Positions 3,601-51,373 of a stretch of DNA of 64,000 bases are shown here, piece after piece. Each line of letters starts with the position of its first letter. Position 1 is the stretch's first letter. A program made the position numbers and the translations under genes. Source of the stretch: Mobula birostris (Eukaryota); contig NC_092383.1 in the NCBI RefSeq assembly GCF_030028105.1, positions 86,881,921 to 86,945,920 of the forward strand. Reading direction: 5' to 3'. The notes beneath the pieces are model-generated. The model was given only the letters and a program-made list of their open reading frames with translations, did not search any database and was not told the origin of the DNA.

Positions 3601-3920
3601 TTCCAGGTGCTTTATGGCCAGAAGATAAAGTAAGAGGAGTTGTGAAAAGGGCAATCACAATCGATTGTCACTATGCACCAATGTATCATTCACACTCAAA
3701 GTATTTGTGCCATATGTGGGATTGCCAGGGCACATTGTTAGTGAATACAGATGGACAAATGAGCAGTATGGAAGAATGACAGTCAGAGATAACACATCCC
3801 AGCAAATATTTACTGTTACTATGGAGAATCTTGTCTCTAATGATACAGGAGTTTACAGATGTGGAATTACAACATCTGGCAATCATCCAGTGTGTGATGT
3901 GCATCTACAAGTATCTGACA
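3601..3920 (+). pseudogene. Gene A: Ig V-set exon of a CD300/pIgR-like receptor, with a 1-nt frameshift
   Basis: Acceptor tttctccctcag ends at 3600; donor gtaggt at 3921. Translates as PGALWPEDKVRGVVKRAITIDCHY..KYLC..(frameshift)..GRMTVRDN..IFTVTMENL..NDTGVYRCG..VHLQVSD. Length is 320 nt, one short of a symmetric phase-1 exon. It has GG at 3753-3754 where the paralog has GGG, giving TGA at 3777. Confidence 0.9.
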
Positions 3921-4410
3921 GTAGGTTTCTCGTTGATCGACTTGATGTCTCCACTGAAATGCCTGATACATGTTTTCTCTGGAAAGAGTCAGGGCAGCAG
4001 GAATATCCGGAGGCTCCACAGCAGTGCAGAGATCTGTGGCGAGTGGACAAGGATAAAGAAATCCCGGTCATAATTCTCTCACCCAGTGCAGGGTCTGACC
4101 CAGGGCCGGGACACTGATTTCCAGTGGGAGGCTCAGCACATTTTCCTGCCTTGGAACTCCATGAATTGTCACCCTGTCAGAGGAGAAAGTATTTGCTACC
4201 CTGAGACAAATCAGTGTGGATAAATCGCCAGGGCCTGCTGAGTTTTTCCCTTGGACTCTATAGGTGGCAAGTGCAGAAATTACTGGGGCTATGCCATACG
4301 TATTTAAATCATCCTTAGTGACAGAAGACAGAGGACTGGAGGATAACCACTGTTGTTCTGCTGTTTAAAAATGGCTCTAAACATAAAACAGGAAATTATA
4401 GAGCGGTAAG

Positions 4411-5020
4411 GAGAAGATGGTGGCGCGTCGCAGCACGCGTAGCCTCTCCGGTGAAGTGATATGGTATTGTTAACTAGGGACTGTGAACAATTCTGATTTG
4501 ATGGAGACAGCCACGAGAGCACAGAGGAACATCTGGAGTAACTTCTGAAATGCCCGGTTTGCTGCCGCTGCTACCGTGTGATCGAGAATCTCCAGAGGGA
4601 AGGCCACAAAATCCTTGGCTTTGCCTGCTGCTGGCAGCCGGGGCCGGGGTCGAAGCGTTTGGCAGAGATGGTGCTCAGTGCTGGAGGGCTGGTCGGAGCT
4701 CGAAGTTTTCGGACGACTCAGAGTCGGACTGTGGTCGGGTATGGCAGGGAGGGTTTTCTTCCTTCTCCCATCTGCATGAGATGTGGGACTTCTGAGAGAC
4801 TTTGAACTTTTTACCATGCTAATGGCCTGTTCTTCGTCAAGTTACGGTACTGCTTGGACTGTTGTAACTATATGTTATAATTATGTGGTTTTTGTCAGTT
4901 TTTCAGTCTTGGTCTGTCCTGTGTATCTGTGATATCACTCCGGAGGAATATTGTATCATTTCTTAATGCATGCATTACTAAATGGCAATAAAAGATGACT
5001 GCATGTCCTCATAATCTAAA
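4411..5020 (+). mobile_element. Unclassified non-autonomous retroelement, copy 2, inserted in an old CR1 fragment
   Basis: Homologous to 296-970. The flanks rejoin as CR1 sequence (aattatagagcggtaag / tctgacatcagtgtaggaaag). Confidence 0.7.
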
Positions 5021-5640
5021 AATAAAGTCTGACATCAGTGTAGGAAAGTTATTGGAATGTGTTCTAAGAGACACATTCTAAGATATATGTAATATTTGGA
5101 TAGCTATGGACTGATTAAGGATAGTCAGCATGGCTTCAGGCATGGTAGTTCACGTCTAACCAATCTTATAAGGTTTCTTGAGGAGTTTACCAGGAAAGTG
5201 GATGAAGACAAGGCAGTGGATGTTGTTTACATAGACATTAGCAAGGCACTTGATGAAAACCAGCTTTGGAGATAGGTCAATAAGTTTCAGTTGCTTGGCA
5301 TTCAAGATGAGGTAGCAAACTGGATTAGACATTAGCTTTGTGGAAGAAGCCAGAGAGTGGTAGTAGATGGTTGCCTCTCCGACTGGAGGCCTGTGACTCA
5401 TGGAGTTCCACAGAGTATGGTACTGAGTCTGTTGTCCTTTGCATCTATATCAATGATCTGGATGATAATGTGGTTAAATGGAACAGCAAGTTTGCAGATG
5501 ACACCAAGATTTGGGGGTGTAGTGGACAGTGAGGAATGCTTTCATGACTTGCAGAGGGATCTGTAAAAGCTGGAAAAATGGGCTGAAAATTGGCAGATGG
5601 CATTTAATGCAGTCAAGTGTGAGGTTTTGCACCAGAAGCA
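5021..5640 (+). mobile_element. Old degraded CR1 reverse transcriptase (RT) fragment
   Basis: Remnant translations QHGF, SDWRPVT.GVPQ and SKFADDTK, with frameshifts. Confidence 0.8.
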
Positions 5641-5654
5641 CCTACCTACCTACC

Positions 5655-7408
5655 TGACTGACCAGTTGAATAACTACTTTGGTTCTGTCTTCACTAAGGA
5701 GGACATAAATAATCTTCCGGAAATAGTAGGGGACTGAGGGTCTACTGAGATGGAGGAACTGAGGGAAATACATGTTAGTAGGGAAGTGGTGTTGGGTAAA
5801 TTGAAGGGATTGAAGGCAGATAAATCCCCAGGGCCAGATGGTCTGCATCCTAGAGTGCTTAAGGAAGTAGCCCAAGAAATAGTGAATGCATTAGTGATAA
5901 TTTTTCAAAACTCGTTAGATTCTGGACTAGTTCCTGAGGATTGGAGGGTGGCTAATGTAACTCCACTTTTTAAAAAAGGAGGGAGAGAGAAACCGGGGAA
6001 TTATAGACCGGTTAGCCTAACGTCGGTGGTGGGGAAACTGCTGGAGTCAGTTATCAAGGATGTGATAACAGCACATTTGGAAAGCGGTGAAATCATCGGA
6101 CAAAGTCAGCATGGATTTGTGAAAGGAAAATCATGTCTGACGAATCTCATAGAAATTTTTGAGGATGTAACTAGTAGAGTGGATAGGGGAGAACCAGTGG
6201 ATGTGGTATATTTGGATTTTCAAAAGGCTTTTGACAAGGTCCCACACAGGAGATTAGTGTGCAAACTTAAAGCACACGGTATTGGGGGTAAGGTATTGGT
6301 GTGGGTGGAGAATTGGTTGGCAGACAGGAAGCAAAGAGTGGGAATAAACGGGACCTTTTCAGAATGGCAGGCAGTGACTAGTGGGGTACCACAAGGCTCA
6401 GTGCTGGGACCCCAGTTGTTTACAATATATATTAATGACTTGGATGAGGGAATTAAATGCAGCATCTCCAAGTTTGCGGATGACACGAAGCTGGGTGGCA
6501 GTGTTAGCTGTGAGGAGGATGCTAAGAGGATGCAGGGTGACTTGGATAGGTTGGGTGAGTGGGCAAATTCATGGCAGATGCAATTTAATGTGGATAAATG
6601 TGAAGTTATCCACTTTGGTGGCAAAAATATGAAAACAGATTATTATCTGAATGGTGGCCGATTAGGAAAAGGGGAGGTGCAACGAGACCTGGGTGTCATT
6701 ATACACCAGTCATTGAAAGTGGGCATGCAGGTACAGCAGACGGTGAAAAAGGCAAATGGTATGCTGGCATTTATAGCGAGAGGATTCGAGTACAGGAGCA
6801 GGGAGGTACTATTGCAGTTGTACAAGGCCTTGGTGAGACCACACCTGGAGTATTGTGTGCAGTTTTGGTCCCCTAATCTGAGGAAAGACATCCTTGCCAT
6901 AGAGGGAGTACAAAGAAGGTTCACCAGATTGATTGCTGGGATGGCAGGACTTTCATATGAAGAAAGACTGGATGAACTGGACTTGTACTCGTTGGAATTT
7001 AAAAGATTGAGGAGGGATCTGATTGAAACGTACAAGATCCTAAAGGGATTGGACAGGCTAGATGCAGGAAGATTGTTCCCGATGTTGGGGAAGTCCAGAA
7101 CGAGGGGCCACAGTTTGAGGATAGAGGGGAAGCCTTTTAGGACCGAGATCAGGAAAAACTTCTTCACACAGAGAGTGGTGAATCTGTGGAATTCTCTGCC
7201 ACAGGAAACAGTTGAGACCAGTTCATTGGCTATATTTAAGAGGGAGTTAGATATGGCCCTTGTGGCTATGGGGGTCAGGGGGTATGGAGGGAAGGCTGGG
7301 GCGGGGTTCTGAGTTGGATGATCAGCCATGATCATAATAAATGGCGGTGCAGGCTCGAAGGGCCAAATGGCCTACTCCTGCACCTATTTTCTATGTTTCT
7401 ATGTTTCT
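5655..7408 (+). mobile_element. Young 5'-truncated CR1 LINE
   Basis: Contains an uninterrupted RT ORF, a CR1 3'UTR and a (TTTCTATG)n tail. Confidence 0.95.
5750..7312 (+). CDS. CR1 ORF2, RT and C-terminal part (5'-truncated)
   Basis: 520 aa ORF with KSPGPDG, NYRPVSLTS, QHGF..GKSCLTNL, YLDFQKAFDKVPH, GVPQGSVLGP, KFADDTK and RPHLEYCVQFWSP. Confidence 0.93.
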   Translation: MEELREIHVSREVVLGKLKGLKADKSPGPDGLHPRVLKEVAQEIVNALVIIFQNSLDSGLVPEDWRVANVTPLFKKGGREKPGNYRPVSLTSVVGKLLESVIKDVITAHLESGEIIGQSQHGFVKGKSCLTNLIEIFEDVTSRVDRGEPVDVVYLDFQKAFDKVPHRRLVCKLKAHGIGGKVLVWVENWLADRKQRVGINGTFSEWQAVTSGVPQGSVLGPQLFTIYINDLDEGIKCSISKFADDTKLGGSVSCEEDAKRMQGDLDRLGEWANSWQMQFNVDKCEVIHFGGKNMKTDYYLNGGRLGKGEVQRDLGVIIHQSLKVGMQVQQTVKKANGMLAFIARGFEYRSREVLLQLYKALVRPHLEYCVQFWSPNLRKDILAIEGVQRRFTRLIAGMAGLSYEERLDELDLYSLEFKRLRRDLIETYKILKGLDRLDAGRLFPMLGKSRTRGHSLRIEGKPFRTEIRKNFFTQRVVNLWNSLPQETVETSSLAIFKRELDMALVAMGVRGYGGKAGAGF

Positions 7409-7429
7409 TACAAAGAGAACAGTAGGGCA

Positions 7430-10745: not shown

Positions 10746-10816
10746 TTTGATGCAAAATGCTAATATAGTCAGTATAATCTGGGAGTATTTACTTTGTCTC
10801 CTCGACAACCAGGCTC

Positions 10817-10898
10817 TGAGGATCAGATTCATCACGTCTCTGCAAAAGGAAATGGTCAACCCATCAGATTCCTCGACAATGGGATCTCTGCTTCATTT
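10817..10898 (+). repeat. Inverted repeat, left arm (82 bp)
   Basis: Reverse complement of 11843-11924, with 6 mismatches in 82 nt by manual alignment. Confidence 0.9.
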
Positions 10899-10902
10899 CC
10901 AG

Positions 10903-10953
10903 CTGCACCAGCTATTCAAATTTCTATTTACCCACCTGCACCCATGACTTCAT
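10903..10953 (+). CDS. Gene A: candidate stalk exon 1
   Basis: Acceptor cttcatttccag; 51 nt, symmetric phase 1; reads APAIQISIYPPAPMTS. The donor gtgact is weak. Confidence 0.4.
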
Positions 10954-11140
10954 GTGACTCTCATCCGGAGGCTAAGCAGGTGTTAAACCTTGCCCAAATG
11001 TGACCTGTAGGCCAGCAGAGGGAATAGTGCCTTACACCTCCTTTGGTAGAGACATATCTCCACTCTGCCACCCTATATTAATCATTCTAATCTGTCTGCA
11101 TATTTCATGTCCCTTCTCCCTTTCACCCTTTCACCATCAG

Positions 11141-11536: not shown

Positions 11537-11639
11537 TTTCATGATATGGATGATGGGTCGTTGGCTGCTCTTTGCTCTTCTGATGATCAGCACGAGTTCA
11601 GTCTCATGGTTTACAAGCGAAACTAAGATAGGCTTATAG
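11537..11639 (+). CDS. Gene A: terminal TM exon with Arg in the membrane segment and a short tail
   Basis: Acceptor cttccattttgttcag. Reads FMIWMMGRWLLFALLMISTSSVSWFTSETKIGL*. The hydrophobic W..RW.LF segment resembles fish pIgR/CMRF35-like TM regions. An AATAAA lies at 11844. Confidence 0.75.
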
Positions 11640-11842
11640 ATATCAGATAAATTGCTTGCAAATATACTGTTCATTTGAAGAAAAACATTTAAATACATGA
11701 ATACTTTCTTATCCTATGGTCAAACCAAGCTTTATGCAGATGATACAACTCGGCTTTGACATGCTCTCTTGTGTGCAGAATGCTTGATGTGAATGTATGG
11801 AATGCTTGTTTCAGACAAAATTCCATTGTGAGTGGCCATCTG

Positions 11843-11924
11843 AAATAAAGCAGAGATCCCATTGTCGAAGAATCGGATGGGTTGACACTTGCCTTTTGCA
11901 GAGACGTGATGAATCTGATCCTCA
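11843..11924 (-). repeat. Inverted repeat, right arm (82 bp)
   Basis: Reverse complement of 10817-10898. Confidence 0.9.
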
Positions 11925-13589
11925 CAGTATGGTGGTCCAGGAGGTAAAGTGAAGTCTCCCAGATCGCATTGACTGTGCTTCAATTTTGCATCAAGATCAA
12001 ACTTTCATTCTTCTGCCCACTGTCATCCTTCAAGGCAGTGACTTTGATTTTTTGAAATTCTTTCTCCAACATGTTACCCTCATTGATATCAATATAACAG
12101 CAGTTTTCCCAATGTTTCCTTCATCACCCCAGCAAGTATTTTAACCCGTACATACTGTTTCTGTGAACTAATTAATACCCTTATACACTGTTAAACTCAT
12201 TCTATGGATTCAATTGCCTGCAGATGTTGTTTATTCTAATAACCGATGAATGATAATCAATTAAGATGCTTCTTCATAAACTGATATTATCAAAAATGGG
12301 TTTTGTTTCGAACTGAAATGCATTCATGGGGAATAGATCACATTCAGGCTCCTGGACTTCCCTTTGTTGTCAACAGCTGTGAATGTTCAGGAAAGGGGAA
12401 CAGTTAATTACCCATTCTGATATTCCATCAGAACAAATTTATGAAGTATTAGCTTTCCTTTTAACTCTTCCGAAGCTGTCTGACATTCTGGGTCTCTCTA
12501 TTATCTGCAGATTTCATTTCAGATAGGCACATATTCATAGTTCATAGTTCAAGTTTCATTGTCATTCAACCACACATGAATATGCATGAATACAACCAAA
12601 CAAAACAGCACTACTCTGGGGCCAAGGTGCAAAACACAGTACCAACAGTCACACAACTAATACATGTAAGATTGCAAGCACATATAAGTAAAATACCGTC
12701 AAACAAAAGATCATGATGTTGCAGAAATCTGCAGTTTCATACAATACGGCTGAGTGAACACTAGGGGGCAGCATCGCTTGCAGCTTGAATGCTGCACCAC
12801 ACCGCCTGCTGCAGAGCGCACTGACTCTGATGCCTCTCTCCTGGGGGGCTGGAAACATGCAACATTGTGGCTTGAAGCCGAGGCCACACAACTCCTCTGC
12901 TGTCCATCAATAAATCAGTGAATCAGAGTTGCAGAATTCCAAATGAACAATGTCCAACAAGTTCTTGCGATCGCAAGGAAAGCACTAAGACCATCACTTC
13001 CTGCTAGATTGCACACCTTCTTTGTGCGACAAAGCCTCTCTGACACAGGCAGCTTCACGGTCCGCACCAAGTCCAGCTCTTTCAGTTTCGCCACCAACAA
13101 GCAACTCACTGACGGGGTAGACCTGCAGTACTTTAAGTTCTTAATGTCTTGCAGGGAGATGTGATTGAAAATAATACATTTAAAAAGGACAATAACATAT
13201 TTGGTTGAGCTCATAGAAGCTGCTATGATCAAACACACCACCATCTTATTTTGCTTTTGTGTTTGGAAATATTGGCACACATCGATTGCTGTGAAGAATT
13301 TTTCAATACGAGTACAATTAATGTCACTGTACAAGGGTGTTAAAGGACAGAGAACAATAGAAATTAATACAGTATAGGGAGCTGAATAAAATGAGTGACA
13401 CACACGTTGCAGGTTGTATCGGTCAATGCAGTGTGAAATTAGAAACAGGAGATATTGTTTATCTCAAAGCCGATCTGTGACTGTAGCCCACGATTGTACA
13501 ATAAATCACGTTCTTTGAAAATGACAGAAGGGAAACTGCATTGTTGTAATCAAGAAGTTAGAAAACATAGATTACTCACTACTAATCGG

Positions 13590-14063: not shown

Positions 14064-14084
14064 TTTTATGTGTGTTGCTCCTCC

Positions 14085-14705: not shown

Positions 14706-14754
14706 AATGTAGGCTAGTATGGCTGTATGGCCGCTCTCTCTATAGTGAATACTA

Positions 14755-15250: not shown

Positions 15251-15254
15251 TGTG

Positions 15255-15645
15255 TTCTAAAAGCAGCATCCATCGTCAAAGATCCTCACCACCCAGGCCG
15301 TGCTCTTTTCTCGCTGCTGCCACCATGTGGAAGGTACAAGAGCTTCAGGAATCGCAGGTTTCGGAACAGTTACTACCCCTCAACCATCTGGCTCTTGAAC
15401 AAAAGGGGATAACTACACTCACACTATTTCTGGTTTCCCACAGCCGATGCTCTCACTTAAAGGACTCTTTATCTTGTTGTTTTGTGCTCGTTATTTATTG
15501 CTATTTATTTATATTTGCATCTGCACAGCTTGTCCATTGATCCACTTACAGTTTCTGTTCTATTGATTTGTTAACTATGCCCGCTGAAAAGAAATCTCAG
15601 GATTGTATGTGGTGACATTTATACAATCTGATAATAAATTTGACT
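15255..15645 (+). mobile_element. Rex1/Babar 3' end
   Basis: Reads KAASIVKDPHHPG.ALFSLLP.GRRY..RFRNSYYPSTI, followed by an AT-rich 3'UTR with AATAAA. Confidence 0.75.
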
Positions 15646-16449: not shown

Positions 16450-18360
16450 GTACGGATGAGTGCGGCTTGCTGTACATTCCCAAACCAAAAGCTGTGGATG
16501 AACCAGGAGGTATGTCATCTGCCGAAGGCTAGATCTGTGGCATTCAAGTCTGGCAATCCAGGTCTGCACCAGAAAACCAGATGTGACTTGGGCTATTTTA
16601 AAGTCGAAGAGACAATTTCAAATGAGGTTGGAGGCAACATCGGATGCACGACAACTCTGGCAGGGCCTGCAAGACATTACTTCCTACAAAGCAAAATCCA
16701 CTACTCCACTCTCTCTATACCCATGACTCTGTGACTAGGCACAGCACGAATACCATCTGTAAATTGCTGATGATACAACCATTGTTGGGAGAATCTCAGA
16801 TGGAGATGAGAGGATATTCAGGAGCGAGATATACCAACCAGTGGGGTGGTGTTGCGACAACCTTGCACTCAATGTCAGTAAGACGAAAGAGCTGATTGTG
16901 GACTTCAAGACGGGTAAGATGAAGGAACACATACCAATCCTCACTGAGAGATCAGAAGTGGAGAGCCGTTTCAACTTCCTGGGTGTCAAGATCTCTGAGC
17001 ACCTAACGTGGTCCCAACATATCAATGCAGCTATAAAGAAGGCAAGGCAGTGACTATACTTCATTAGGAGTTTGAGGAGATTTGGTATGTCAACAAAAAC
17101 ACTCAAAACAACCTTTCCCTCAATGTCGTAAGAACAAAGGAGCCGGTTGTGGACCACAGGTGGAATGGAGACAGGCCAACCCCGATTAATATCAATGGAT
17201 CTGGGTTTGAGAGGGTGAACAGCTTTAAGCTTCTCGGCATACACATCACTGAGGATCTCACGTCATCTGTATATACCGGCTGTGTGGTGAGAAAAGCACA
17301 ACAGCACTTCTTCCACTTCAGACGGTTGAAGAAGTTTGGTATGAGCCCCCAAATCCTAAGAATTTTCTACAGGGGCACAATTGAGAGCATCCTGACTGGC
17401 TGCATCACTGCCTGGTATGGGAACTGTAATTCCCCCAATTGCAGGACTCTGCAGAGAGTGGTGTGGACAGATGTGAACTTCCCACTGTTCAGAACATTTA
17501 CAGAGACAAGTGTGTAAAAAGGGCCCGAAGAATCTTTGGGGACCCGAGTTACCCCAACCACAAATTGTTCCAGCTGCTGCCATCCAGAAAACTGTACCGC
17601 AGCATTAAATCCAGGACCAACAGGCTCCGGGACAACTTCTTCCACCAGGCCATCAGACTGATGAATTCGCGCTGATGCAATTGTATTTTTATGCTATATG
17701 GACTGTCCTGTTGCACATACTATTTAATACAAATTACTATAAATTGCACATTGCACATTTAGATAGAGACATATGTGAAGGATGTAAGTAATAAAGTCAA
17801 TTCAATTTAAAAACTTCTATAGATGTACCATGACAGGCTGCATCACTGCCTGGTATGGTTGATGGGCGAGGGGTGGGGAGGAGGGTTGAGCTGCTGCTCA
17901 GGTCTAAAAGAAGCTGCAGAGGGTTGTAAATTCAGTTGGTAAGGTCTTGGGTATGAGCCTACAAAGTACCCGGAACATCTTCAAGGAGCGGTTTCTCAGA
18001 AAGGCAGCGTCCATTATTAAGGACCCCCAGCACCCAGGGCATGCCCTTTTCTCACTGTTACCATCAGGTAGGAGGTACAGAAGCCTGAAGGCACACACTC
18101 AGCAATTCAGGAACAGCTTCTTCCCCTCTGCCATCCCATTCCTAAATGGACATTGAACCCATGAACACTACCTCACTTTTATAATATATATTATTTATGT
18201 TTTTGCACAATCTTTAATCTATTCAATATACATACACTGTAATTGATTTACGTATTTATTTATTCTTTTTTCTCTTCTATATTATGGATTGCATTGAACT
18301 GCTGCTGCTAAGTTAACAAATATCATTACACATGCCGGTGATAATAAACCTGATTCTAAT
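16450..18360 (+). mobile_element. Three stacked Rex1/Babar fragments
   Basis: Repeated LNVSKTKELIVDF, ESILTGCITAWYG and IIKDPQHPGHALFSLLPSGRRYRS motifs, each fragment with its own 3' tail. Confidence 0.8.
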
Positions 18361-20428: not shown

Positions 20429-20465
20429 ATGTGGATTTCGATTCTTCTGATTAGTTTCCTGCCTG
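20429..20465 (+). CDS. Signal-peptide (leader) exon of a CD300/pIgR-like gene
   Basis: ATG in acaATG context; reads MWISILLISFLP plus G; perfect gtgagt donor; phase 1, matching the V exons. A paralogous exon lies at 51337. Confidence 0.88.
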
Positions 20466-23127: not shown

Positions 23128-23330
23128 TTTCCTTTTTGGTTAGAGAGACATGGAGTTGTGGAGATGGAGAGATGGGGTAAGAGGAGTTGTTGGAAAAGTG
23201 ATCACAATCAAATTCCCCTATGCAACAGTAAACTAGTCACATACAATGTATTGGTGCTATGGAATATTGGTCACCAATATTCAGTTTTAGTGGAAACAAA
23301 TGGGCTACATAGACAGGAAGGAAATGTTGC
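23128..23330 (+). pseudogene. Decayed and truncated Ig V exon (5' half)
   Basis: Reads VRGVVGKVITIKFPYATVN*SHTMYWC..(frameshift)..QYSVLVETNG, which aligns with the V exons at 3601 and 41175. The B-strand Cys is lost, there is an in-frame stop, and the 3' half is absent. Confidence 0.8.
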
Positions 23331-24224
23331 ATGTATATTCAGTTTTCTTAAAAAGATTGGCTTTTTATTTGTCACGTACATGAAAACATTGAAACATACA
23401 GCAAAATGCATCTTCTTGTGTCAAATCAAATTAGTAAAGACTGTACTGGGATTAAACTGGGTTAAATCGGTGGGTTACTGGGTGGTGCGGCTCTTTGGGC
23501 CTAAAGAGCCTGTTCTGTGCTGAATCTCCAAACAAATAAACACTGAGAACATGAGTTGTGGAGTCCTCGATAGTGAGCCCATAGGTTGTGTGTAGTGATC
23601 AGTTCAGTGTTGAGTGAGTGAAGTTATCCATGCTGATTCAGGTGCCTGATCTTGAAACTACAGTTGGTTAGTTACTGAAACTTGATGCATTAAAATGTGA
23701 ATCCTCTAAATCAATTTATCAATGAAAATGACATCATCTTGAAAGATATACAACTAAACTAAGCTCAAAATTGTTGTGTAGATAGCAGTTTTATTCCATG
23801 TTGAAACTTGCATAAGAGTGATCTACCATGTAAAGACAGCCTTAGGCAGAATTTCTTCTCTCCCTCAACCACTGTGTGAACAAATCTGTGCTATACTACT
23901 TCATTATCTGATTACAAAGAATCTTCTAATATTTCTAATGTTGTTTTCTCATGTTGATTCTCACATTTGCAAACAACTCCCTTCGTGTAGTAGCTCTGAG
24001 GCTAACTGTACATCCACGGGTTACAGTTACACGTCAACTCTGAGAAAAGTAGCAACTTCTGTTTGCAGATTCACACCCCGTTGACCATTGCAAACTGCAT
24101 CAAGCTGCAATCACTCATTTTGTTCAACACCCAACTTTTAATTCTATTGTTCATCTGTCTTTAAGACCTTTTAATATTGACTGGAAATATATCCAATTTC
24201 AATTAATTTTACTTTTATGTTAAT

Positions 24225-39074: not shown

Positions 39075-41174
39075 ACAAAGAAACAATAGAACCCACGACA
39101 AGCCACACACAACAAAGTCTGACAAACATCAACACGCAAAATAGGATGAATCGTGCAAATAATTAAAAAGATGTAAACAAGTAGTACATAGAACATGAGT
39201 CACGGAGTCCCCGAAAGTGAGTCCACAGTTTCAGAGTCAGCTCAGTGCTGAGGTGTGTGAAACTAATCCAGGAGCGCGATAGTTGCCGGGCATCAACTGT
39301 TGATGAACTCTGCAGTGTGGGCCCCAGGGCTCCTGTACCTTCCGCCTGAAGGTAGTACCAAGGAGAGAGGGAGACGGGTCAGACGCAGGCCTATGGAACA
39401 GGCTCAGGTGGGGGGATCTTGCTGACACGGAGTAATGCAGCTGAACACTGGTTCATTTCCAGGTCCCTTTGTAAACTTAGACAACTCTTTCCACTGTCCA
39501 CCACACTACAGTGATACGCGTAGCTTATTACTCATACCACCTACATTTTCATTCCAAATTATTAATATTGATGACAAATGACAGTGGTTAACAAATAACA
39601 GCACCGATCCCGATGGCACACTACTGGTGGTAAAGTCAGATGTTGTCAGAAAACCAACACTCCACTACCACAGTCTGACTCCTTCCACCAAGCCTATTCA
39701 GTATCTATCCAGCTAGTTTACCATGAGATCTCACATTGCAGATCAATCTACTATACAAGATCTTGCCATAAGCCTTGCTAAACTCATGTGCTAAACGCTA
39801 CTGCCCTGTTCTCATCAGTTCCTGCTGTGATGACAAACCAAGTTATCAGAAGATTGATGCTAATGAGAGAGAGATAAGGGAGACAAATGGAGAAACGTTC
39901 CAATGTTAATGAGAGAGGAGAGAGATAACGGAAAAGAAACACAATTCAGAATATTGACAGACTGATTGCTTTGAACCTGAACTGTTTGAAGTTTGATGGA
40001 CAGGCGATACCCCAGCAGGGGGATAAAAAGAACAGGTTCGCTAAGGCATGACACACACCACAAGATCACGAGATAACGAGACCCTGGAAGAGCGGTGTGC
40101 CCCCACAAGTTGGTGAGAGTTTGGAGGTCCGGTTGGCGGGAACCGACCATAGACTCACAGGGTGAAAAGGTACAATCGGCGGGAACCTGGTGTGTGTGTC
40201 CGCCCTTGCTTGGGCGCTGGGTTCACTGCGGAAGAACGGTCGGATCCGGAACGGAGGGGTCACAGTCGGTGACCACAGCGGGATAGAAGACATAAAAGGG
40301 TTCGCCCGAAAGCCAACTGCGAAGAACATCAAAGGTCTGCTTGAATCAAAATTTGCATCTCTCTCTCTCTCTCTCTCTCCAACGGCACAACAGCGATTAC
40401 TGCGAACTGTACTAAGCTGAACTGAACTCTGCGTCACTTGAGACTGATCATCTTACCCCTAGACTGCGATAGAGCTTGGTGGATTCCTATTACCCTAGTT
40501 CTGTGTACATGTGTGTTTTATCATTGCTAACCTGTTGCATTTATATCCTTACGATTAGAGTACTGTGTTACTTATTTCTTTAATAAAACTTTATTAGATC
40601 CTAGTAATCCAGACTCCAACGAGTGGTCCATTTCTGCTTGTTTGGCAACCCAGTTACGGGGTATGTAACACTGCGGTCATTTCTTCAAAAAAATTCAGTC
40701 AAATTCTTTTGAGAGAGGATTTCCCATGCTCAAAATTATGTTGACTATCTCAATCAGATGTTGTCTTTGCAAATTCAGGTAGATCATGTCTTGCACAATT
40801 GCCTCCAGCTGAATCATTAGTGGGCAGTGACAAGGATGACTCCAATCAAATAAAAGTCATTACTTGTGAAGAGTTGTGAGCACATGATGAGGGACGATGC
40901 TGTTGTCTTCTCAGTCTATATGGACTTCAATTGTACCAATAGACAAGGGCACACTGCCACTGGGGAACACAACTTTAAATAAAGCATCTTCTTTTATTAT
41001 TATTATGTTCTTTATCTTTCGTATTTTTTTTGCTGCTGCATTGAATCGAGTAACAATGATTTCACTCTCCTTTACACTTTTGTACAGGAAATGACATTAA
41101 ACAATCTCGAATCTTGAATCTCCCTGTGTTGATTTGATTTTACCTGTGTATTTTCTGAAAAATTTCTCCCTCAG
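39075..41174 (+). repeat. Intron segment paralogous to 2680-3600
   Basis: Collinear similarity up to the V exon, interrupted only by the solo LTR at 39826 and a short extra block. Confidence 0.9.
39826..40670 (+). mobile_element. Solo LTR, family 2 (Gypsy-like)
   Basis: TGT...TAACA termini, exact 4-bp TSD CTGC, and AATAAA near the 3' end. The paralogous site near 3400 is empty. Confidence 0.9.
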
Positions 41175-41494
41175 TTTCAGGTGCTGTATGGGCAGAAGAT
41201 GAAGTAAGAGGAGTTGTGGGAAGAGCGATCACAATCGATTGTCACTGTGCACCAATGTACCGTTCACACACAAAGTATTTGTGCCGCATGTGGGATCGCC
41301 AATGCTCATCGTTAGTGAATACAAATGGGACAAATGAGCAGTATGGAAGAATGACAATCAGAGATAACACATCCCAGGGAATATTTACTGTTACTATGGA
41401 GAATTTTGTCTCTAATGATACAGGACTTTACAGATGTGGATTTACAACATCTGGCAATCTTCCAGAGTTTGACGTGCATCTACAAGTATCTGAC
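41175..41494 (+). CDS. Gene B: Ig V-set exon of a CD300/pIgR-like receptor (open frame, normal splice donor missing)
   Basis: Acceptor tttctccctcag. Reads SGAVWAEDEVRGVVGRAITIDCHC..KYLCRMWDRQCSSLV..GRMTIRDN..NDTGLYRCG..VHLQVSD. After GAC the sequence jumps to DNA that lies about 4.2 kb further downstream in gene A. Confidence 0.9.
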
Positions 41495-42614: not shown

Positions 42615-42930
42615 AACCTGTCTGTTCCTTTGCTTCGATTTTCACCACCAAGTGGCTCAAGTTGTGCGGACTCCATGTCACTGTCCTGTGAGTCTGCCCA
42701 TGGATCCCTTCCCATTCAGTACTCATGGTATGAAAAGACCCCATCCATGGATTCAAAGATCTCTGACATCAATAAACTGGATCTACATTGTCAATCCTTA
42801 AAATACAAAAATTATCTGTATTATTGCAAAGCCTCAAATGCTAATGAAGAGAAGTCCAGTGAAGTACTTAATGTATCCATCTCCAACGGTGTCAGCACCT
42901 GCAGAAATGTGATTGAAGTCAACAGCACGG
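42615..42930 (+). CDS. Gene B: C2-type Ig domain exon
   Basis: Acceptor attcttttccacag and perfect gtaagt donor at 42931. Reads SVPLLRF..SMSLSCES.HGSLPIQYSWYEK..LYYCKASN..KSSEVLNVSI. At 316 nt it is 2 nt short of a symmetric phase-1 exon. Confidence 0.88.
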
Positions 42931-43070
42931 GTAAGTGGTGCAGGTTTTGATTCTTTATGATGGTCAATGGAGTACAACTGAATGATTGATGTGTGCTGGA
43001 TATTGTGTTGTTGGAACTTCACTCAGGAGCATGGAGTGTATGTTGTCACCACCTTTCAGAGAATGAAACT

Positions 43071-43420
43071 ATGCAGAAAATTTGAAGTTAATAACTCATC
43101 TCCTTCTACCTTAGACCACGAACTTATCAATCAACCCTGATGAGTTATTAACTTCAAACTTTCTGCATAATCACTCAAAGAGTTGACCTGCATGTGCATG
43201 TAACAACAGCTGTATAACTCATCTCCTTCTACCCTAGGCCACGAACTTATCAATCAGCTGTGCTGTGGACACTTTCTGGAGGTCCAAGATCCGTATATTC
43301 CACGACCGCTGGACGAAATGTGTAAATGTAGGAGGGGACTACGTTGAAAAATAAATGTGCTAGGTTTTCTAAAAGTGACTCCTGCTACCTTAGGCCACAA
43401 ACTTATCAATCACCCCTGTA
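43071..43420 (+). mobile_element. Mariner-derived non-autonomous element remnant
   Basis: Encodes KIRIFHDRWTKCVNVGGDYVEK*, a mariner transposase C-terminus. Three copies of the TIR-like motif ccttaggccacgaacttatcaatca; the last ends at a TA. Confidence 0.75.
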
Positions 43421-44085
43421 TGTAAAATCATACTTTCATATAATTCTCAAAAAAAGGTCAGGTGTATCTTTTACCTCTTGACCACTCACTGCATACCACT
43501 GGAGAAAATTCCCTGCTTTCATTATACATGCGGGAGGAGAAGATGGCGACGCGACGCAGCTCACAGCGGCCACTGCGGTGGTGATGTCTGTTATTTGTCA
43601 AGTAGGGTGTCGTGTGCAATTCTGTTTTGATGGAGACGAACGTGAGAACACGGAGGAACATCTGGTGAAACTTCTGAAATGCCTGCTTCGCTGCTGCTGC
43701 TACTGTGTGGTCCAGAATCTCCAGAGGAGAAGGCCCCAAGTCCTTGGCTTTGCTTGTTGCTCGGCGGCCGGGACGAGGTTGAAATGCTCGGCAGAGGATG
43801 GTGCTCGGAGAGGCTGTGTCGGAGGGGCTAGTCGGAGGCTCGAAGTTTTCGGATGGACTCAGAGTCTGCTGCGGTTGGGTGCTTCCAATGGTGCTGCTGC
43901 GTGAAATGATGAATCTATCGGGACGTTGAGACTCTTTTTTACCGTGCCCATGGTCTGCTCTTTATCAAATTATGGTATTGCTTTGCACTGTTGTAACTAT
44001 ATGTTATAAATATGTGGTTTTGTCAGTTTTAGTCTTGGTTTGTCCTGTGTTTTCTTGTGATATCATTCTGGAGGAATGTTGTATC

Positions 44086-45252
44086 TGTCATGGTCCGGTC
44101 TGTGAAGTCCGTATTCCGGTTCACGGTCCGGTCCATAGTTCCTTATTCCAGGGTTTCTAGTTTTCCCCAGTTTCTGTTGTAGGCACATGATTCTCGTTTT
44201 GGGGCTGAGACATAAATACCTCTGCAAACCAGGGATTCCCTGCTAGACTGTCCTGTTCCCCTCCCTGTCTTTTCCCCCCTTGTCTGACTCTCTGCCTGGA
44301 TACCTCACCTGACTCTCCATCTAGTTCAATTGCCAGTGCAGAGATGGAACTGTCTGTTGTTCTTCGGTGTTTGTCTCTTCTTGTCCTTGCCTCCATGGAG
44401 TAAGTCAGGCCTTTCTGCCGTTGCCCTGTGGGGGGGATCTGTCTTGTCTTGTCCTCGCCTCTGTGGAGTAAGTCAGGCCGTTCTGCCGTTACCCTGCGGG
44501 GGGGGACCTGTCTTGTCTTGTCTTGTCTTTGCCTCTGTTGGGTAAGTCCGGCCGTTCTGCCATTACCCGACGGATGGTCCTGTCCCACCTTGGGGTGGAG
44601 ATGAAGTTGAGCCCCGGCTTGTCTAAATATAAGTCCCAGCTCTGTGTCTATGTACTGTCCTATCTCATGTTGGTGTCGTGTTGAAGATGAGTCCCGGCTT
44701 GACGAAGGATAAGTCCCGGCTCCATGTTGGTGTACAGTTCCCAGTCTGTCTCCGAGGTCCAGCCTCCGGGTTATCAGCCTCTGCATTCCAAGCCTCAAGA
44801 CCCCAAGCCTGTCTCCAAGCCTCCAGCCTCAAGACCCCAATCCTGTCTCCAAGCCTCCAGCCTCAAGACCCCAATCCTGTCTCCAAGCCTCCAGCCTCAA
44901 GACCCCAAGCCTGTCTCCAAGTCTCCAGCCTCAAGACCCCAAGCCTGTCTCCAAGCCTCAAGACCCCAAGCTTCCAGTCTCAAGACCCCAAGCCTGTCTC
45001 CAAGCCTCAAGACCCCAGTCTCCAGTCCTGCAGTCATGTCCATGCCTGGTTCTGGGGCCTGAGCCCGAGGCAAGACCCAGATTCTGGGTCCTTGTCCAGT
45101 CACTGGCTCGGGATCCAAGCCCAAGTCTGTGTTCTTGTCCCTGCTCCTTGACTGTATCCTGTCACCTCCCTACTCTAGTCAAGTCCTGTTCCTTGTACTT
45201 CACTGTCTGTGTCTTGCATTTGGGTCCACCATCAACACCCCCCAAGGTGACA
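44086..45252 (+). mobile_element. Solo LTR, family 1
   Basis: TGTCA...TGACA termini with exact 5-bp TSD GTATC at 44081-44085 and 45253-45257. Homologous to 8783-9958. Confidence 0.92.
44785..45020 (+). repeat. Minisatellite inside the LTR
   Basis: Units of about 35 bp, CCAAGCCTCCAGCCTCAAGACCCCAA(G/T)CCTGTCT, in roughly 6-7 full or shortened copies. Confidence 0.9.
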
Positions 45253-45391
45253 GTATCATTTTTATAATGCATGCATTTCTAAATGACAATAAATGAGGAC
45301 TGAGTGTCCTCATAATCTAATCTAATCTAAATCTAATCAAAGTTACTGTAGATTAAGTCATGGGTCTGTTTTATTGAGATGATCCTGAGAT

Positions 45392-45615
45392 GGGCACCAT
45401 GGTGGCGTAGAGGTTAGAGTGAAGCAATTACAGTTCGGGCATTTTGGAGTTTGGTGTTCAATTCTGTAAGGAGTCTGTACATCTTCCCTGTGGAATGCGT
45501 GGGTTTTCCCCAGGTACTCTGGATTCCTCCCACAGTCCAAATACATACCGGGGAGGTTAATTGGTCACTATAAATTGTCCCATGATTGGGTTGGGGCTAA
45601 TCAGGTTTATTATCT
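45392..45615 (+). mobile_element. tRNA-derived SINE
   Basis: A-box-like ggtggcgtagaggttag, B-box-like gttcaattc, and core tgcgtgggttttcc...ggattcctcccacagtccaaa. Confidence 0.75.
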
Positions 45616-45694
45616 AATAAAAGTTTTTAACTTTTCATACCTTTCACATTCATCAGTCATATAATAGATCTTGAAATTTATTTTTTTATTTCAG

Positions 45695-45762
45695 GAAATA
45701 ACCACATTGGAAGAAAACGTCGTTTATACAGATCTTCCCCACACTTGAAACAATGAGGCAGG
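45695..45762 (+). CDS. Gene B: candidate cytoplasmic exon with an ITIM
   Basis: Acceptor tttttttatttcag. Phase 0 reads EITTLEENVVYTDLPHT*; VVYTDL fits (I/V/L/S)xYxx(L/V). TGA at 45746 precedes a possible donor, gtaaag, at 45763. Confidence 0.6.
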
Positions 45763-47344
45763 GTAAAGTTCTTTTGCATCTCACACGTTCAGTGTCCATG
45801 TGACTCAGTTCAGTACTCACAACCATCTCATAGAGTTACAGAGTAATACAGCGTGGATAAAGGCCTTTCGGCCCAGTCTGTCCATGCTGACCACAGGGCC
45901 CCCCAGCAGGTACAGGTGCTTTCTGTGGGTTCAGTCTTGAGACTTATTGGAGGTCTGCAATGGTGACTGTAAGTTCAGGAGCATTTGGAGACTGTCAGGG
46001 CAAGTGATAACAATCCAAACTCTTTCTGTTGAAAACGTGCTTAGAATGCATAAGGTTCATTGGGAAGGGATCTGGTGTGATCAAACATACTGCTTCATAT
46101 TGCAGCCTATTATCACAATTAAACCCTGCCAAATCTGACAGCCAGTCTGAGAAATTGGTTTTGTCTCTTGGCATTGTCGATTACTTTATAAAGGTCATGA
46201 ACCGATTTCTTGCAGAACTCAGGGTCACCAAGTGTGACCGCCACAGTGCTGAGCTTTGTTCAGAGCAGACCTGTCATCAGTCACCCAGGTCTTACTTTTC
46301 ATTGCCTAAATAGTTGTCTGAAATGAAATGTTTCCTTAGAATATAAATGAGGAATTATGCAGAAGGAAGACAGATTAGAAATCACAGTGAGTCAGCTGAT
46401 GATATCAGACATCCAAATGATTGAAGTTTGCGAAGTACATGAAACAAAAAACAGTACACGCTGCATGGCATTCTGGCTGAACAGAGGAGCACTTTTAGTA
46501 ATAGACTAAGACAACTGTGCTGCACAAAGAGCGCTATATGACGTCATTCTTACCCTCGGTATTAGGCTCTATAATGAGTCAACCTATAGCTGGGGAAGTG
46601 ATGAAGCCCTCCTGTTAGACTGTTCATGGTAACTTTTTTTAAAATTTTACTTCTGTTTTAATATTTATATCTGTGCACTTGTAATGCAACTGTGACACTG
46701 GGATTAAGGTATCTATCTATCTAATTTTCAGCAAATGATAGAAATTTGTGGAGAGTGTTAAAATGTTAGCAGGACTGAGTGATAATACTCAAGTGAGGGG
46801 ATCCTGGTGATTTGTGGGCTGTGTCAGAAAAGATGACATGTTGAGAATCAGATGAAACTACTTCCAGAAGCAAAGGAGATGTAAATGAGAGCCACAGATG
46901 AAGCAGTTGGAACAGAGCTTGTTGGCAGTGGACGAACACCTGAGCTCACAGTTGGAGTTAATGTAAAGTTCATGATTGTTGTCAAAGCTGGTTCTTGTAC
47001 ACAGGCACTCAGTAAATTTCTTCAAAGTCTTCCCACTCTGCTGAATCTGTTCAGCCAGTGGGACGTCCCAATTGCTGCAGGAACTTGCCCACTCTGGGAA
47101 ATTCCTCCTTTCCCGGCCCCTGCCCACAACCAGAACCACACACAAACTGCTTCAGGAACTCAGCAGACCAGGCAGTGTCTACAGTGAGAAATGGCAAGTT
47201 GATGATTTGGATTGGGACCTTTCAATGTGAGGTGTCCAAAACCACTAGCAGAACATCTAGTGTCTCAGGAGGCATTGCACACTCTCAGCTGGACAATTTT
47301 TATTTTTGATTTGATTTTATTTAGGGATATATACAGCCCAACAA

Positions 47345-47525
47345 GAATTCACTGCCTATTTAACCTGCTAACCCGTATGTCTTTGGAATGTGGGAGGAAA
47401 CTGAAGCACCCAGATGAAACCCACACAGTCACGGGGAGAATGTACAAACTCCTTACAGACAGTGGTGGGAATTGAACCTGGGTCACTGGTGCTGTAATAT
47501 TGTTATGATAGCCGCTACACGGTAA
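47345..47525 (-). mobile_element. tRNA-derived SINE
   Basis: The minus strand has the B-box ggttcaattccc and the same core as 45392-45615. Confidence 0.78.
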
Positions 47526-48835
47526 AGTTAACATCAATTAGGATGGAAGGGCACAAACTTTTCAAACCCATTAAGTAATTCCTTGATGCTGACCATTCCT
47601 GTTGCTGGCTATGCCACGTGTAGGCTCAATGTTGGCTGCAGGGATCCCCGTGGCAGACGGCATAGTACCGCACCTGACTCTCTGATGGCCGGTGGACAGG
47701 GAACAGATCAGGAGAGGGACTTATGATGGCTGAAAACTGTAGGTATGAGCAGGGCCGAGGCCATGGACGAGGCTTCTCCTCGTGAGTGGGGCTTGCTCTC
47801 ATTGTCCAGCTTTGTCCTCACTGGTGGGCTTTCTGAGCCTTGGATTTCAGATGGAATTTGTCCCACGGGAAGGTCTTGTTCAAATAGGAAGGATTTTAAA
47901 GTTCAAAATAAATTTAGTATCAAAATGCATTTCTGTCACAATATATAGCCCTGAGGTTCACTTTCTTGTGGGCATTCTGAAAGGGTCACTAGCGAACTCA
48001 AGTGCAGGAATCACAGTAATTTCAACAATCCAAACAAGAGACTTATTCCAGAAATGCACCAGCAAAACGTTAGCAGGAACTCAGGCACACTACAGAGAAT
48101 CTTGAAGAACTGAAATGACCTGATACAGAGAAGAACTCGGTCTGAGTTTCACCAGGCAAGAATCCACAATGACCAAGCAAAGGGGTATTGGCAAGCACTC
48201 TTCAAATACACTCTGGAACCCGTAGGAATTCAGTGCCAATCAGATAACATAGGTTTCCACACGAAGCTATAATCCCCAAAGGCAACAACTCCAATGCAAG
48301 ATATTGACAATACCGTGCTAATTAAATGATCCCAAATCGAATAAAAGTGATAAATACATAGACAGCTCAAAAATCCCCACGATCCCAAATGAGACACCTG
48401 CAACACAAAGTGAGAAACCTAGATTGTCCAGACGAACAATTAGACATAAAAAGCAAACAATCTAAGGAAAACCGCATACCCACAAGGTGACACTGAAAAA
48501 ATACAACCCACATACTAACTGAAAAAAAATCTCTTCTTCTTTAAAGAAATTTTCTGTGACAGATTCGCAGTAAATACAAATAAACACCAGAGATTCAATG
48601 AAAAAACACACTCAAAATAGACAACCAACCAATATGCAAAAGACAACAAACTCTGCAAACACAAAAAAAACAAAATAATAACAATAAACAAATATTAATT
48701 ATCAAGAGCATGAGATGAAGAGTCCTTGAAAGTGAGTGTATAGGTTGTGGAAGCTGTTCAGTGTTGGGATAAAAACACCGATTGCAATTCCCCCCCACTC
48801 AACTGTACTCACTCAGTCCATAAATGAACGTGTTC

Positions 48836-50465
48836 CCATAAGACCATAAGACAAAGGAGCAGAAGTCGGCCATTCGGCCCAACGAGTCTGCTCTGCCATT
48901 TCATCATGAGCTGATCCATTCTCCCAATTAGTTCCACTCCCCCACCTTCTCACTATAACCTTGGATGTCCTGGCTACTGAGATACCTATCAATCTCTGCC
49001 TTAAATACACCCAATGACTTGGCCTCCACTGCCACCCGTGGCAACAAATTCCATAAATTCACCACCCTCTGGCTAAAAAAATTTCTTCACACCTCTGTTC
49101 TGAATGGGCACCCTTCAATCCTTAAGTCATGCCCTCTTGTACTAGACTCCCCCACCATGGGAAACAACTTTGCCACATCCACCCTGTCCATGCCTTTCAA
49201 CATTCGAAATGTTTCTATGAGGTCCCCCCCATTCTTCTAAACTCCAAGGGATACAGTCCAAGAGCGGACAAACGTTCCTCATATGTTAACCCTCTCATTC
49301 CCGGAAGCATTCTAGTGAATCTTCTCTGTACCTGCTCCAACATCAGCACATCCTTTCTTAAATAAGGAGCCCAAAACTGCCCACAGTACTCCAAGTGATG
49401 TCTTACCAGTGCCTTATAGAGCCTTAACATCGCATCCCTGCTCCTATACTCTATTCCTCTAGAAATGAATGCCAACATTGCATTCCCCTTCTTCACCACC
49501 GACTCAACCTGGAGGTTAACTTTAAGGGTATCCTACATGAGGACTCCCAAGTCCCGTTGCATCTCAGAACTTTGAATTCTCTCCCCATTTAAATAATAGT
49601 CTGCCCATTTATTTCTTCTGCCAAAGTGCATAACTATACACTTTCCAACATTGTATTTCATTTGCCACTTCTTTGCCCATTCTTCCAATCTATCCAAGTC
49701 TCTCTGCAGACTCTCTGTTTCCTCAGCACTACCGGCTCCTCCACCTATCTTTGTATCACCAGCAAACTTAGCCACAAAGCCATCTATTCCATAATTCAAA
49801 TCATTGATGTACAATGAAAAAAGAAGCGGCTCCAACGCGGACTCATGTGGAACACCACTGGCAGCCAACCAGAATAGGATCCCTTAATTCCCACTCTCTG
49901 TTTCCTGCCAATCAGCCAACGCCCTATCCATGTATGTAACTTTCCCGTAATTCCATGAGCTCTTATCTTGTTAAGCAGCCTCATGTGTGGCACCTTGTCA
50001 AAGGCTTTCTGAAAATCCAAATATACAACAACCACCGCATCTCCCTCGTCTAGCCTACTTGTAATTTCCTCCAAAAATTGCAATAGGTTTGGCAGGCAGG
50101 ATTTTCCTTTAAGGAATCCATGCTGAGTTCTGCCTATCTTGTCATATGCCTCCAGGTACTCCGTAACCTCATCCTTGACAATCGACTCCAACAACTTCCC
50201 AATCACTGATGTCAAGTTAACAGGTCTACAATTTCCTTTTTGCTTCCTTGCCCCCTTCTTAAATAGCGGAATGACATTTGCAGTCTTCCAATCCCCCGGA
50301 ACCATGCCAGAATCTATTGACTTGAAAGATCATCACTAATGCCTCCACAATCTCGACAGCTACTTCCTTCAGAACACGAGGGTGCATTCCATTTGGTCCA
50401 GGAGATTTATCAACCCTTAGACTATTCAGCTTCCTCAGTACTTTCTCTGTCGTAATTGTGACTGT
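48836..50465 (-). mobile_element. 5'-truncated CR1 with frameshifts
   Basis: RT motifs in ORFs 49796-50305, 49533-49868 and 49215-49499; (CTTATGGT)n tail; same subfamily as 59962-64000. Confidence 0.92.
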
Positions 50466-51186
50466 AATTCCCAGTTAAGTTTCGGACTATACCTACATTC
50501 TACACAGAGCCCTGGCCTGTGAATGAGCTTGGAGACACCAAAGCACTACTCCCTATTATGGCCCCAGTCAGAAGACCCAGGAAAGCCTGGCTAGGCAGAA
50601 CATGTCTTGATGTTTGTGCAAGCCACAGGTAAGCTCTCTGGAGTATCGCCGACTGAAGCAAATCCCTCCGAACAGACACATTACCCTTCTCTGAGGATAG
50701 TAACCTCATTGCAACTGAGTGGCTTGAGATTACCTGAGATCCCGAGAGCAATGTTATCATCAGCTTGGTTCCTGGTCGGTCATCAATGGCGGTATGGTCA
50801 AAGGGGCCTTTCCAGACAAAGAGCCAACAGTGGAGCTGGCAGAAGATGCTGATATTTCACAATGGAGGAAGGCTGCAGCAGATAAGGTTCCACAACACTG
50901 GACCCTGACACCAATCTGGCAAAGACTTTGTCTGTGTATCAGCCTCCCTATGTTAAACAAAGTTGTGCAAAGGTGTTTCTCCATAAAGGGAATAAGGAGA
51001 ACATCATAATCAACTCAAGTGATAGCAGTATTTTTGTCACAGTCACCATTAACTTCTCAGTCAGATTGTTTTACTGACAGTAACTATACTTCACCATTTC
51101 AATCAGATAGTTAAAATTTGATTTGATTCATCTGTTTAGTTTAACCAAGAGTGCCTCAGATTCTAAGGCATTCACTTTCAGCGTCT

Positions 51187-51336
51187 GGCTCACAGTGGTT
51201 TCACAACTGAACTTACTGATTTCTTCTTTCTCTTTCAACTTCCATGTCCCATTTGGTTTGGTCTGTTATTTAGTTCTTAGAGCGAAGAGCTGAGCAACAG
51301 ACAAGTGCTGCCCAGTCAGTCACTGTCAACAGAACA
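51187..51336 (+). promoter_or_regulatory. Putative promoter and 5'UTR, paralog of 20318-20428
   Basis: ggctcacagtggtttcac..acttactg aligns with ggctcattgtggtttcc..acttcctg; AACAGACAAGTGCTG is shared. Confidence 0.5.
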
Positions 51337-51373
51337 ATGTGGATTCTGATTCTTCTCATCTGTTCACTGCCTG
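51337..51373 (+). CDS. Signal-peptide (leader) exon of a further CD300/pIgR-like gene
   Basis: Reads MWILILLICSLP plus G, gtgagt donor, phase 1. No V exon was found downstream within the window. Confidence 0.88.

Follow-up and report, generated by a model that had tools for sequence, protein, structure and literature searches.

The question raised by this locus is whether it holds a pair of working immune receptors, one activating and one inhibitory. An earlier note on the window (the whole stretch of 64,000 nucleotides of Mobula birostris that was analysed) had described a CD300/pIgR-like cluster of a cartilaginous fish, in which a gene A (V, stalk, transmembrane) and a gene B (V, C2, cytoplasmic exon with VVYTDL) join near-identical ligand-binding domains to opposite signalling modules. 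The comparison with annotated chondrichthyan PIGR-like and CMRF35-like proteins that it proposed bears out the family and the animal group: the exons match this family significantly, significant homologues with a CMRF35-like or pIgR-like annotation occur in rays, skates and sharks, skate MDIR2 among them, and the best matches come exclusively from these three groups. Protein searches (lengths 83 to 663 aa) found no near-identical database protein for these exons, the top identity being 88.7%. All the exons named in the note are present, namely the V exons at 3601 and 41175, the transmembrane (TM) exon at 11537, the C2 exon, the exon at 45695, the leaders and a decayed V exon. The remainder of the window contains LINE reverse transcriptase and endonuclease as well as a hAT transposase. 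The window is probably a transposon-invaded stretch of a batoid MDIR (CD300/pIgR-like) multigene cluster, with the relics of two receptor units, here called A and B. Judged from the sequence, it does not look like a working activating/inhibitory pair, and both proposed genes appear to be broken or incomplete.

The exons of both units, with their homology, phases and lesions, were observed directly. The V exon of unit A (V-A, 3601..3920, + strand), recognised by homology, by alignment to the V exon of unit B (V-B) and by exon phases, is a V2-type CD300/pIgR-like V-set pseudo-exon. Compared to V-B and all the homologues, it has a 1-nt deletion in a context starting at 3744, which amounts to a GGG-to-GG length change, and a stop at 3777-3779. 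A Gly is found in place of a conserved Cys (the C' Cys of the QC pair). With the frameshift and the loss of this Cys, V-A lacks the four-Cys arrangement of a CD300/pIgR-type V-set, and it breaks 7 of the 49 positions invariant among homologues, the top count in the set. The acceptor is kept, and so is the donor, a phase-1 site with GT at 3921-3922. A reading frame running past 3920 and aligned to P0027 was rejected as a spurious gapped extension.

The TM exon of unit A (11537..11627, + strand; E = 2e-13 to P0034) is of the activating type with an Arg (GRWLLFALL); it translates as FMIWMMGRWLLFALLMISTSSVSWFTSETK and shares 69-78% identity with P0034 and P0014. The Arg in the TM segment and the 9-residue tail without tyrosine are read here just as the earlier note had described them. 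This tail is a read-through of the exon past an AT (11628-11629, after AAG), where a GT donor is expected, and the read-through appends IGL and a stop. The tail exon of the family, RRDESDPHSMVVQEVK followed by a stop, is present at 11902..11952 (+ strand) with a phase-0 acceptor; it matches the ends of Hemitrygon P0027 and P0020 at 82% identity, and with a dead TM donor it would be skipped. An inverted repeat (10747-10899 / 11842-11994) flanks the TM exon and encloses an extra, inverted copy of the tail exon (10792..10842, - strand). As for the proposed gene A, its V and TM exons exist, but they do not form a gene: the V exon is frameshifted, no stalk exon homologous to that of the family was found between 3921 and 11536 by tblastn, Smith-Waterman or motif search (these could miss a very divergent micro-exon some 40 nt long), and V-A joined straight to the TM exon is out of frame, reading D-I-S and then a stop. 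A complete frame with ectodomain, charged TM and short tail is therefore missing from unit A, although the TM Arg is present. Unit A is probably the surviving 3′ part of an activating-type gene running from a V2 exon through an Arg TM exon to a short tail exon; its V2 is frameshifted, no stalk exon is left and AT stands at the TM donor.

Single-base lesions of this kind could also have arisen during assembly or be confined to a null haplotype; unit A (V2-stalk-TM with Arg-tail), if not more, would then work as an activating receptor in other haplotypes or individuals. The GGG-to-GG change in V-A can stem from a sequencing error, both V-A splice sites are kept, the frames of the TM and tail exons are undisturbed, and paired-receptor clusters such as KIR and LILR commonly vary in copy number and carry null alleles. 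However, several independent lesions of different kinds are found in each unit, V-A additionally lacks a conserved Cys and breaks more invariant positions than any homologue, and the absence of stalk, TM and C2a exons is not explicable by base-calling. We therefore consider this explanation unlikely, and the lesions of units A and B are probably real.

Unit B begins with an intact leader exon (20429..20465, + strand), MWISILLISFLP then G/gtgagt, upstream of a decayed V exon recognised by homology (23153..23331, + strand), in which the first Cys is changed to Phe, an in-frame stop and a frameshift are present and the 3′ half is lost. The two related V exons and the decayed one had been described as a tandem array; all three do lie on the + strand, but the decayed exon, downstream of the leader at 20429, is of the V1 type and not a copy of the V2-type V-A or V-B. 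V-B (41175..41494, + strand; Pfam V-set E = 1.3e-10) is a V2-type V-set with an intact reading frame and without a GT donor. Among solved structures, the closest to it are pIgR D1-type domains and CD300/CLM-1 (phmmer, E = 4e-43 for pIgR D1-type and E = 6e-15 for CLM-1/CD300f), and all four Cys of the CD300/pIgR-type V-set, the canonical pair and the extra C-C' pair, are in place. V-B is 58% identical to skate MDIR2 (P0044, E = 3e-40) and 88.7% identical to the V2 domains of P0084 and P0081, and breaks 5 of the 49 invariant positions, which is inside the range of the annotated homologues. The homology between V-B and V-A stops precisely at 41494, where it gives way to a LINE fragment.

V-B and the C2 exon of unit B (C2-B, 42615..42930, + strand; homology and exon phases) are adjacent exons. 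In the family layout, V and C2 lie on separate phase-1 exons, whereas here V-B has no donor and the Ig frame of C2-B is open in phase 0 only. The canonical phase-1 entry leads to a stop after 24 codons, the pattern expected if 2 nt have been lost close to the 5′ end. C2-B is otherwise well kept, with a good phase-1 donor (G/gtaagt), 50% identity to skate MDIR2 (P0044, E = 3e-27) and 3 of 46 invariant positions broken, again inside the range of the annotated homologues. The first cytoplasmic (ITIM) exon, recognised by homology at 45695..45763 (+ strand), is of the inhibitory type with VVYTDL and translates as EITTLEENVVYTDLPHT, then a stop. This in-frame TGA (45746-45748) occupies the Q/R position of six homologues, whose frames continue, and beyond it the NNEA codons and a gtaaag donor are still recognisable. 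Spliced straight from C2-B, the exon at 45695 would not be read in the frame of VVYTDL.

The stalk, uncharged TM and distal cytoplasmic exons were searched for by low-stringency tblastn with ten homologue tails, Smith-Waterman over four intervals, a motif search and a hydrophobicity scan, which gave only chance-level or repeat-borne matches. For unit B, the low-stringency tblastn, Smith-Waterman and hydrophobicity scans found no stalk, TM or distal cytoplasmic exon in 42930-51300, and all the hydrophobic open frames within this interval lie inside repeats. Among the candidates for missing receptor exons, 15530-15601 (containing a stop, E = 0.4) and 40506-40574 (E = 0.15) were rejected. C-terminal matches to P0010, P0014, P0011 and P0009 at 2652-2729, 39076-39159, 24341-24421, 17982-18153, 29412-29866, 332-394 and 43521-43661 were rejected as repeated elements; they arise because the gene models of these homologues read through repeats.

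As with gene A, the exons of the proposed gene B exist, but the V donor is lost, C2 is shifted by 2 nt, the ITIM exon contains the TGA and there is no TM exon, so the ITIM could not be intracellular. The complete frame, ectodomain, TM and cytoplasmic ITIM of an inhibitory member are thus not found together in unit B, although the VVYTDL exon is present. Unit B is probably what remains of an inhibitory gene like that of P0084, with the order L-V1-(C2a)-V2-C2b-stalk-TM-tail: its leader has survived intact, V1 is destroyed, and C2a, stalk, TM and the last cytoplasmic exon are absent. The loss of the V2 donor, the 2-nt shift in C2b and the nonsense codon cutting the first ITIM exon are further lesions of this unit. 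We infer that neither unit yields a membrane receptor and that the missing exons of both were removed by transposon-associated rearrangements.

On this evidence it is very improbable that gene A (V-stalk-TM with Arg) and gene B (V-C2-ITIM tail) both function and form a couple whose ligand-binding domains are closely related. Such a couple would be in keeping with the existence of all the named exons, with splice sites kept except for the V-B donor, and with the Arg TM and VVYTDL being genuine family modules. Annotated ray proteins also link the same V2 type to both kinds of module: the V2-type domain is combined with an Arg-containing TM in P0027, P0020 and P0034, and with a tail carrying several tyrosine motifs in P0084, P0081, P0080, P0082 and P0083. 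Against it stand the frameshift and stop at 3777 in V-A, the lack of a stalk and the out-of-frame V-TM join on one side, and on the other the missing TM exon, the lost V donor, the C2 shift, the C2/ITIM phase mismatch and the nonsense codon of gene B. The activating/inhibitory theme of the earlier note accordingly holds for the family, where V2-type proteins carry either module, but not for two working genes in the window. The V domains are, moreover, just 79% identical in protein, which does not agree with the claim of near-identical ligand-binding domains. The two domains are no closer to each other than to the V2 domains of other annotated genes, to which V-B is clearly closer. At the DNA level, V-A and V-B are 90.6% identical and the adjacent intron 87.1%. 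Their dN/dS is 1.1 (24 non-synonymous and 6 synonymous changes), which is in keeping with relics, although values near 1 also occur in immune receptors under diversifying selection.

The relics in the window thus belong to a family whose intact members are already predicted by genome annotation in Mobula, Hemitrygon and Hypanus. Among the annotated Mobula pIgR-like and CMRF35-like proteins, P0084 and P0081 are inhibitory and P0034, P0017 and P0011 activating. They share the leader, V1, C2a, V2, C2b and stalk modules with the window family, and their 3′ modules are either a TM with Arg and a RRDESDP-type tail or an uncharged TM and three tyrosine motifs. These annotated models are complete open reading frames, unlike the units in the window, in which several modules are missing and others frameshifted or truncated. 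With mammalian CD300 and pIgR, the V-set shares the extra disulphide pattern (KY-x-C ... QC); however, mammalian CD300 members have one V domain and lack C2 domains, and the likeness is one of sequence similarity. The CD300 family has paired members with either a charged TM or ITIMs, and adaptor recruitment through the TM charge and phosphatase recruitment through ITIMs are established for CD300, LILR and KIR. By analogy with these receptors, an acidic adaptor chain, for example DAP12 or FcR-gamma, would be recruited through the TM Arg of the ray family, and phosphatases through its ITIM tails.

In the part of the literature summarised in PMC3031540, the skate MDIR (Cannon et al. 2006, Immunogenetics 58:362) make up a multigene family that includes both activating and inhibitory receptors, with a CD300/pIgR/TREM-like V domain ahead of a modular number of C2 domains, as in the window; the copies studied here differ in being fragmentary, in having disabling lesions and in coming from a myliobatiform ray. 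Since paired MDIR receptors of both forms have been known in skate since 2006, the window exons have little weight as a discovery. What they do illustrate is how members of such a cluster die in the course of birth-and-death turnover, with transposons inserted at the edges of exons; the decayed copies are consistent with birth-and-death evolution, as the earlier note had proposed. The practical use lies in annotation, where these exons are best entered as pseudogene relics instead of a functional pair.

The well-kept frames of V-B and C2-B imply that unit B was either inactivated recently or still has parts in use. Preserved exons might then serve as cassette or alternative exons, for example from the leader at 20429 to V-B and on to C2-B, through a weak phase-0 GT at 41486 in V-B (CAA/GT at 41485/41486), which gives an in-frame V-B to C2-B junction. 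The product of such use would be a soluble V-C2 protein or a feed into the 3′ exons of a neighbouring gene; taken together, this use and its product have a low probability. The intact leader at 20429 fits such a use, and there is a precedent in soluble carp relatives of the CD300/pIgR-like receptor class, as far as these are covered in PMC3031540. On the other hand, the cryptic donor agrees with the consensus at only 6 of 9 positions, and its presence is no evidence of use because it lies in coding sequence common to V-A. In a more specific form, which we hold to be quite improbable, the V2 donor loss and the 2-nt loss in C2b would cancel each other through this GT in the conserved Q-V-S codons, and the leader at 20429, V-B and C2-B would still make a secreted V-C2 MDIR decoy. 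If true, a conversion from a receptor to a soluble form would have been caught in progress.

Relics of an inactivated unit B remain the preferred reading. A degenerate leader candidate at 40918-40962 was rejected, having neither an ATG nor a donor, and neither intact leader directly precedes V-A or V-B. The second intact leader (51337..51373, + strand), MWILILLICSLP then G/gtgagt, intervenes between V-B/C2-B and the next gene, which speaks against a feed into the 3′ exons of that gene. No V exon follows it in the window, and it points to a gene outside the window.

The window is vertebrate DNA with zero runs of N, and rays, skates and sharks account for every protein homologue of its immunoglobulin exons, the closest being those of Mobula, Hemitrygon and Hypanus, so that the earlier note was right to suppose a cartilaginous fish; its exon coordinates also proved accurate. 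The V exon of unit B (V-B) is recognised as a V-set domain by Pfam, and its nearest solved structures are pIgR D1-type domains and CD300/CLM-1. From full-length homologues we derived a module scheme for the family. Inhibitory genes encode a leader, V1, C2a, V2, an optional C2b (present in P0084 of M. birostris and absent from P0081 of M. hypostoma), a stalk, an uncharged TM segment and three cytoplasmic tyrosine motifs. Activating genes (P0027, P0020, P0034, P0017 and P0011) have the same ectodomain modules, to which they add a short stalk, an Arg-containing TM segment and a small RRDESDPHSLVLQEVK-type tail exon. Two V subtypes can be told apart, V1 (KYWC ... LVETNG) and V2 (KYLC ... LVNTNG); both well-kept V exons of the window, V-A and V-B, are of the V2 type, and its decayed V exon is of the V1 type.

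We then examined unit A, which had been proposed to encode a V-stalk-TM receptor with a 9-residue tail. The V exon (3601-3920) and the TM exon with its Arg core (11537-11627) are where they were said to be, and the latter has the family-conserved G-R-W-L-L-F-A-L-L core (E = 2e-13 against a Mobula CMRF35-like protein). However, V-A is one base short compared with V-B and with every homologue, in a context from 3744 at which tblastn was forced into a frame change, and after this loss the frame runs into a stop at 3777-3779. In addition, its conserved C' Cys is replaced by Gly, and of 49 positions at which ten homologous V2 domains never vary it departs at seven, more than any other domain compared. 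Since the V-A donor is phase 1 and the TM exon requires two bases from the preceding exon, a direct join gives D-I-S and then a stop, and a stalk exon would be required. Homology and motif searches found none homologous to that of the family between 3921 and 11536, which is mostly LINE and other repeat sequence. The V-stalk-TM model thus fails for this gene. The final codon of the TM exon, AAG, is followed by AT rather than GT, and reading through gives I-G-L and a stop, while 275 nt further 3′ lies an open, phase-0 tail exon (11902-11952) with a good acceptor and 82% identity to Hemitrygon tails. Hence, the 9-residue tail is a read-through after apparent loss of the donor. Donor loss by itself would not be sufficient to disable an activating receptor; the frameshifted V-A together with the absent stalk exon would, judging from the sequence, disable that of unit A. 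The TM exon is flanked on both sides by a 153-nt inverted repeat (10747-10899 and 11842-11994, 83% identity), which looks like a local inverted duplication. Each arm contains a copy of the family tail exon with its acceptor, the second copy (RRDESDPQSLVVEETK plus stop) lying at 10792-10842 on the minus strand.

In unit B, the V, C2 and VVYTDL exons attributed to gene B are all present, but they do not join as proposed. The unit opens with a leader exon at 20429, followed by the decayed V1 exon (23153-23331), reported in the earlier note and found here, in which the first Cys is replaced by Phe, one stop and one frameshift occur and the 3′ half is gone. The unit has no C2a exon. The reading frame of V-B (41175-41494) is intact; homology to V-A breaks off exactly at 41494, where the GT is missing, and a LINE fragment begins at 41500. 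The C2 exon (C2-B, 42615-42930) is 74-87% identical to Mobula proteins. Its opening bases encode E-P-V in the canonical phase-1 frame, after which the sequence continues in phase 0 with S-V-P-L-L, the switch expected from a 2-nt loss; entry in phase 1 leads to a stop after 24 codons. The VVYTDL exon (45695-45763) resembles the first cytoplasmic exon of the inhibitory P0033 and P0084, at 61-65% identity over 23 residues, and the AG and GT boundaries match as well. At 45746 it has a TGA in place of the Q or R codon of six homologues; this stop is secondary, since the N-N-E-A codons and the gtaaag donor persist 3′ of it. Because C2-B ends in a phase-1 donor and this exon is phase 0, a direct join reads another frame, without VVYTDL. 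Homology searches and a hydrophobicity scan across 42930-51300 detected no stalk, TM or distal cytoplasmic exons, hydrophobic open frames there being confined to repeated elements. Within the interval expected to hold the stalk and TM exons, 44371-45025 contains tandem repeats (periods 68, 34 and 49 nt).

The two V exons had been described as near-identical ligand-binding domains. They share 90.6% DNA identity, barely above that of the adjoining intron (87.1%), but only 79% protein identity, with 24 non-synonymous and six synonymous differences (dN/dS 1.1). V-B is nearer to the V2 domains of the inhibitory P0084 and P0081 (88.7% protein identity), to which V-A is 82-83% identical. At invariant positions, V-B and C2-B are no more aberrant than annotated homologues, which suggests that unit B was inactivated recently or that parts of it are still in use. 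The joining of one V2 type to either signalling module is a family-wide property, visible in the annotated proteins. The observation of the earlier note is partly confirmed; its interpretation names the right family but is wrong about these two genes. Judged from its sequence, the locus holds ordinary, pseudogenised representatives of a known family. Single-base lesions might reflect null alleles or errors in the assembly, an explanation that does not work for the absent exons.

Elsewhere on the chromosome, the inhibitory P0084 and two activating proteins, P0034 and P0017, all from one 99.8-Mb record of M. birostris, have C2b domains that differ only in a single residue where the exon ends (NSTG versus NSMG), and 3′ of C2b they split into ITIM-type and Arg-TM-type modules, respectively. 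Judging by the protein sequences, these genes have the look of a true activating/inhibitory pair of very recent origin, although their likeness could be due to chimaeric gene prediction.

The second of the two leader exons claimed was also found, at 51337, and both have an ATG and a G|gtgagt donor. Upstream of it, 46885-47222 (+ strand) contains no Pfam domain and matches residues 1-112 of P0035, a Hypanus isoform with an unusual N-terminus ahead of V1, at 50-55% identity. Conservation of an alternative first exon or 5′ region could explain the match, as could misannotation of non-coding sequence.

The window is crowded with LINE reverse-transcriptase and endonuclease fragments. One open frame of 520 aa (5750-7312, + strand; RVT_1, E = 6e-34) sits in the intron that separates V-A from the TM exon, and another of 713 aa (54478-56619, minus strand; RVT_1, E = 4e-36) has relatives repeated at about 5.5-kb spacing over 48836-61589. 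Between the decayed V1 and V-B lies the single hAT transposon relic (26151-28747, + strand), whose two open frames encode 230 and 344 aa; the longer one carries a hAT dimerisation domain (E = 4e-10). The C-termini of the annotated ray proteins P0014, P0011 and P0010 match dispersed repeats on both strands of the window (2652-2729, 17982-18153, 24341-24421, 29412-29525, 29798-29866 and 39076-39159), and transposon-derived read-through sequence probably makes up the ends of these gene models.
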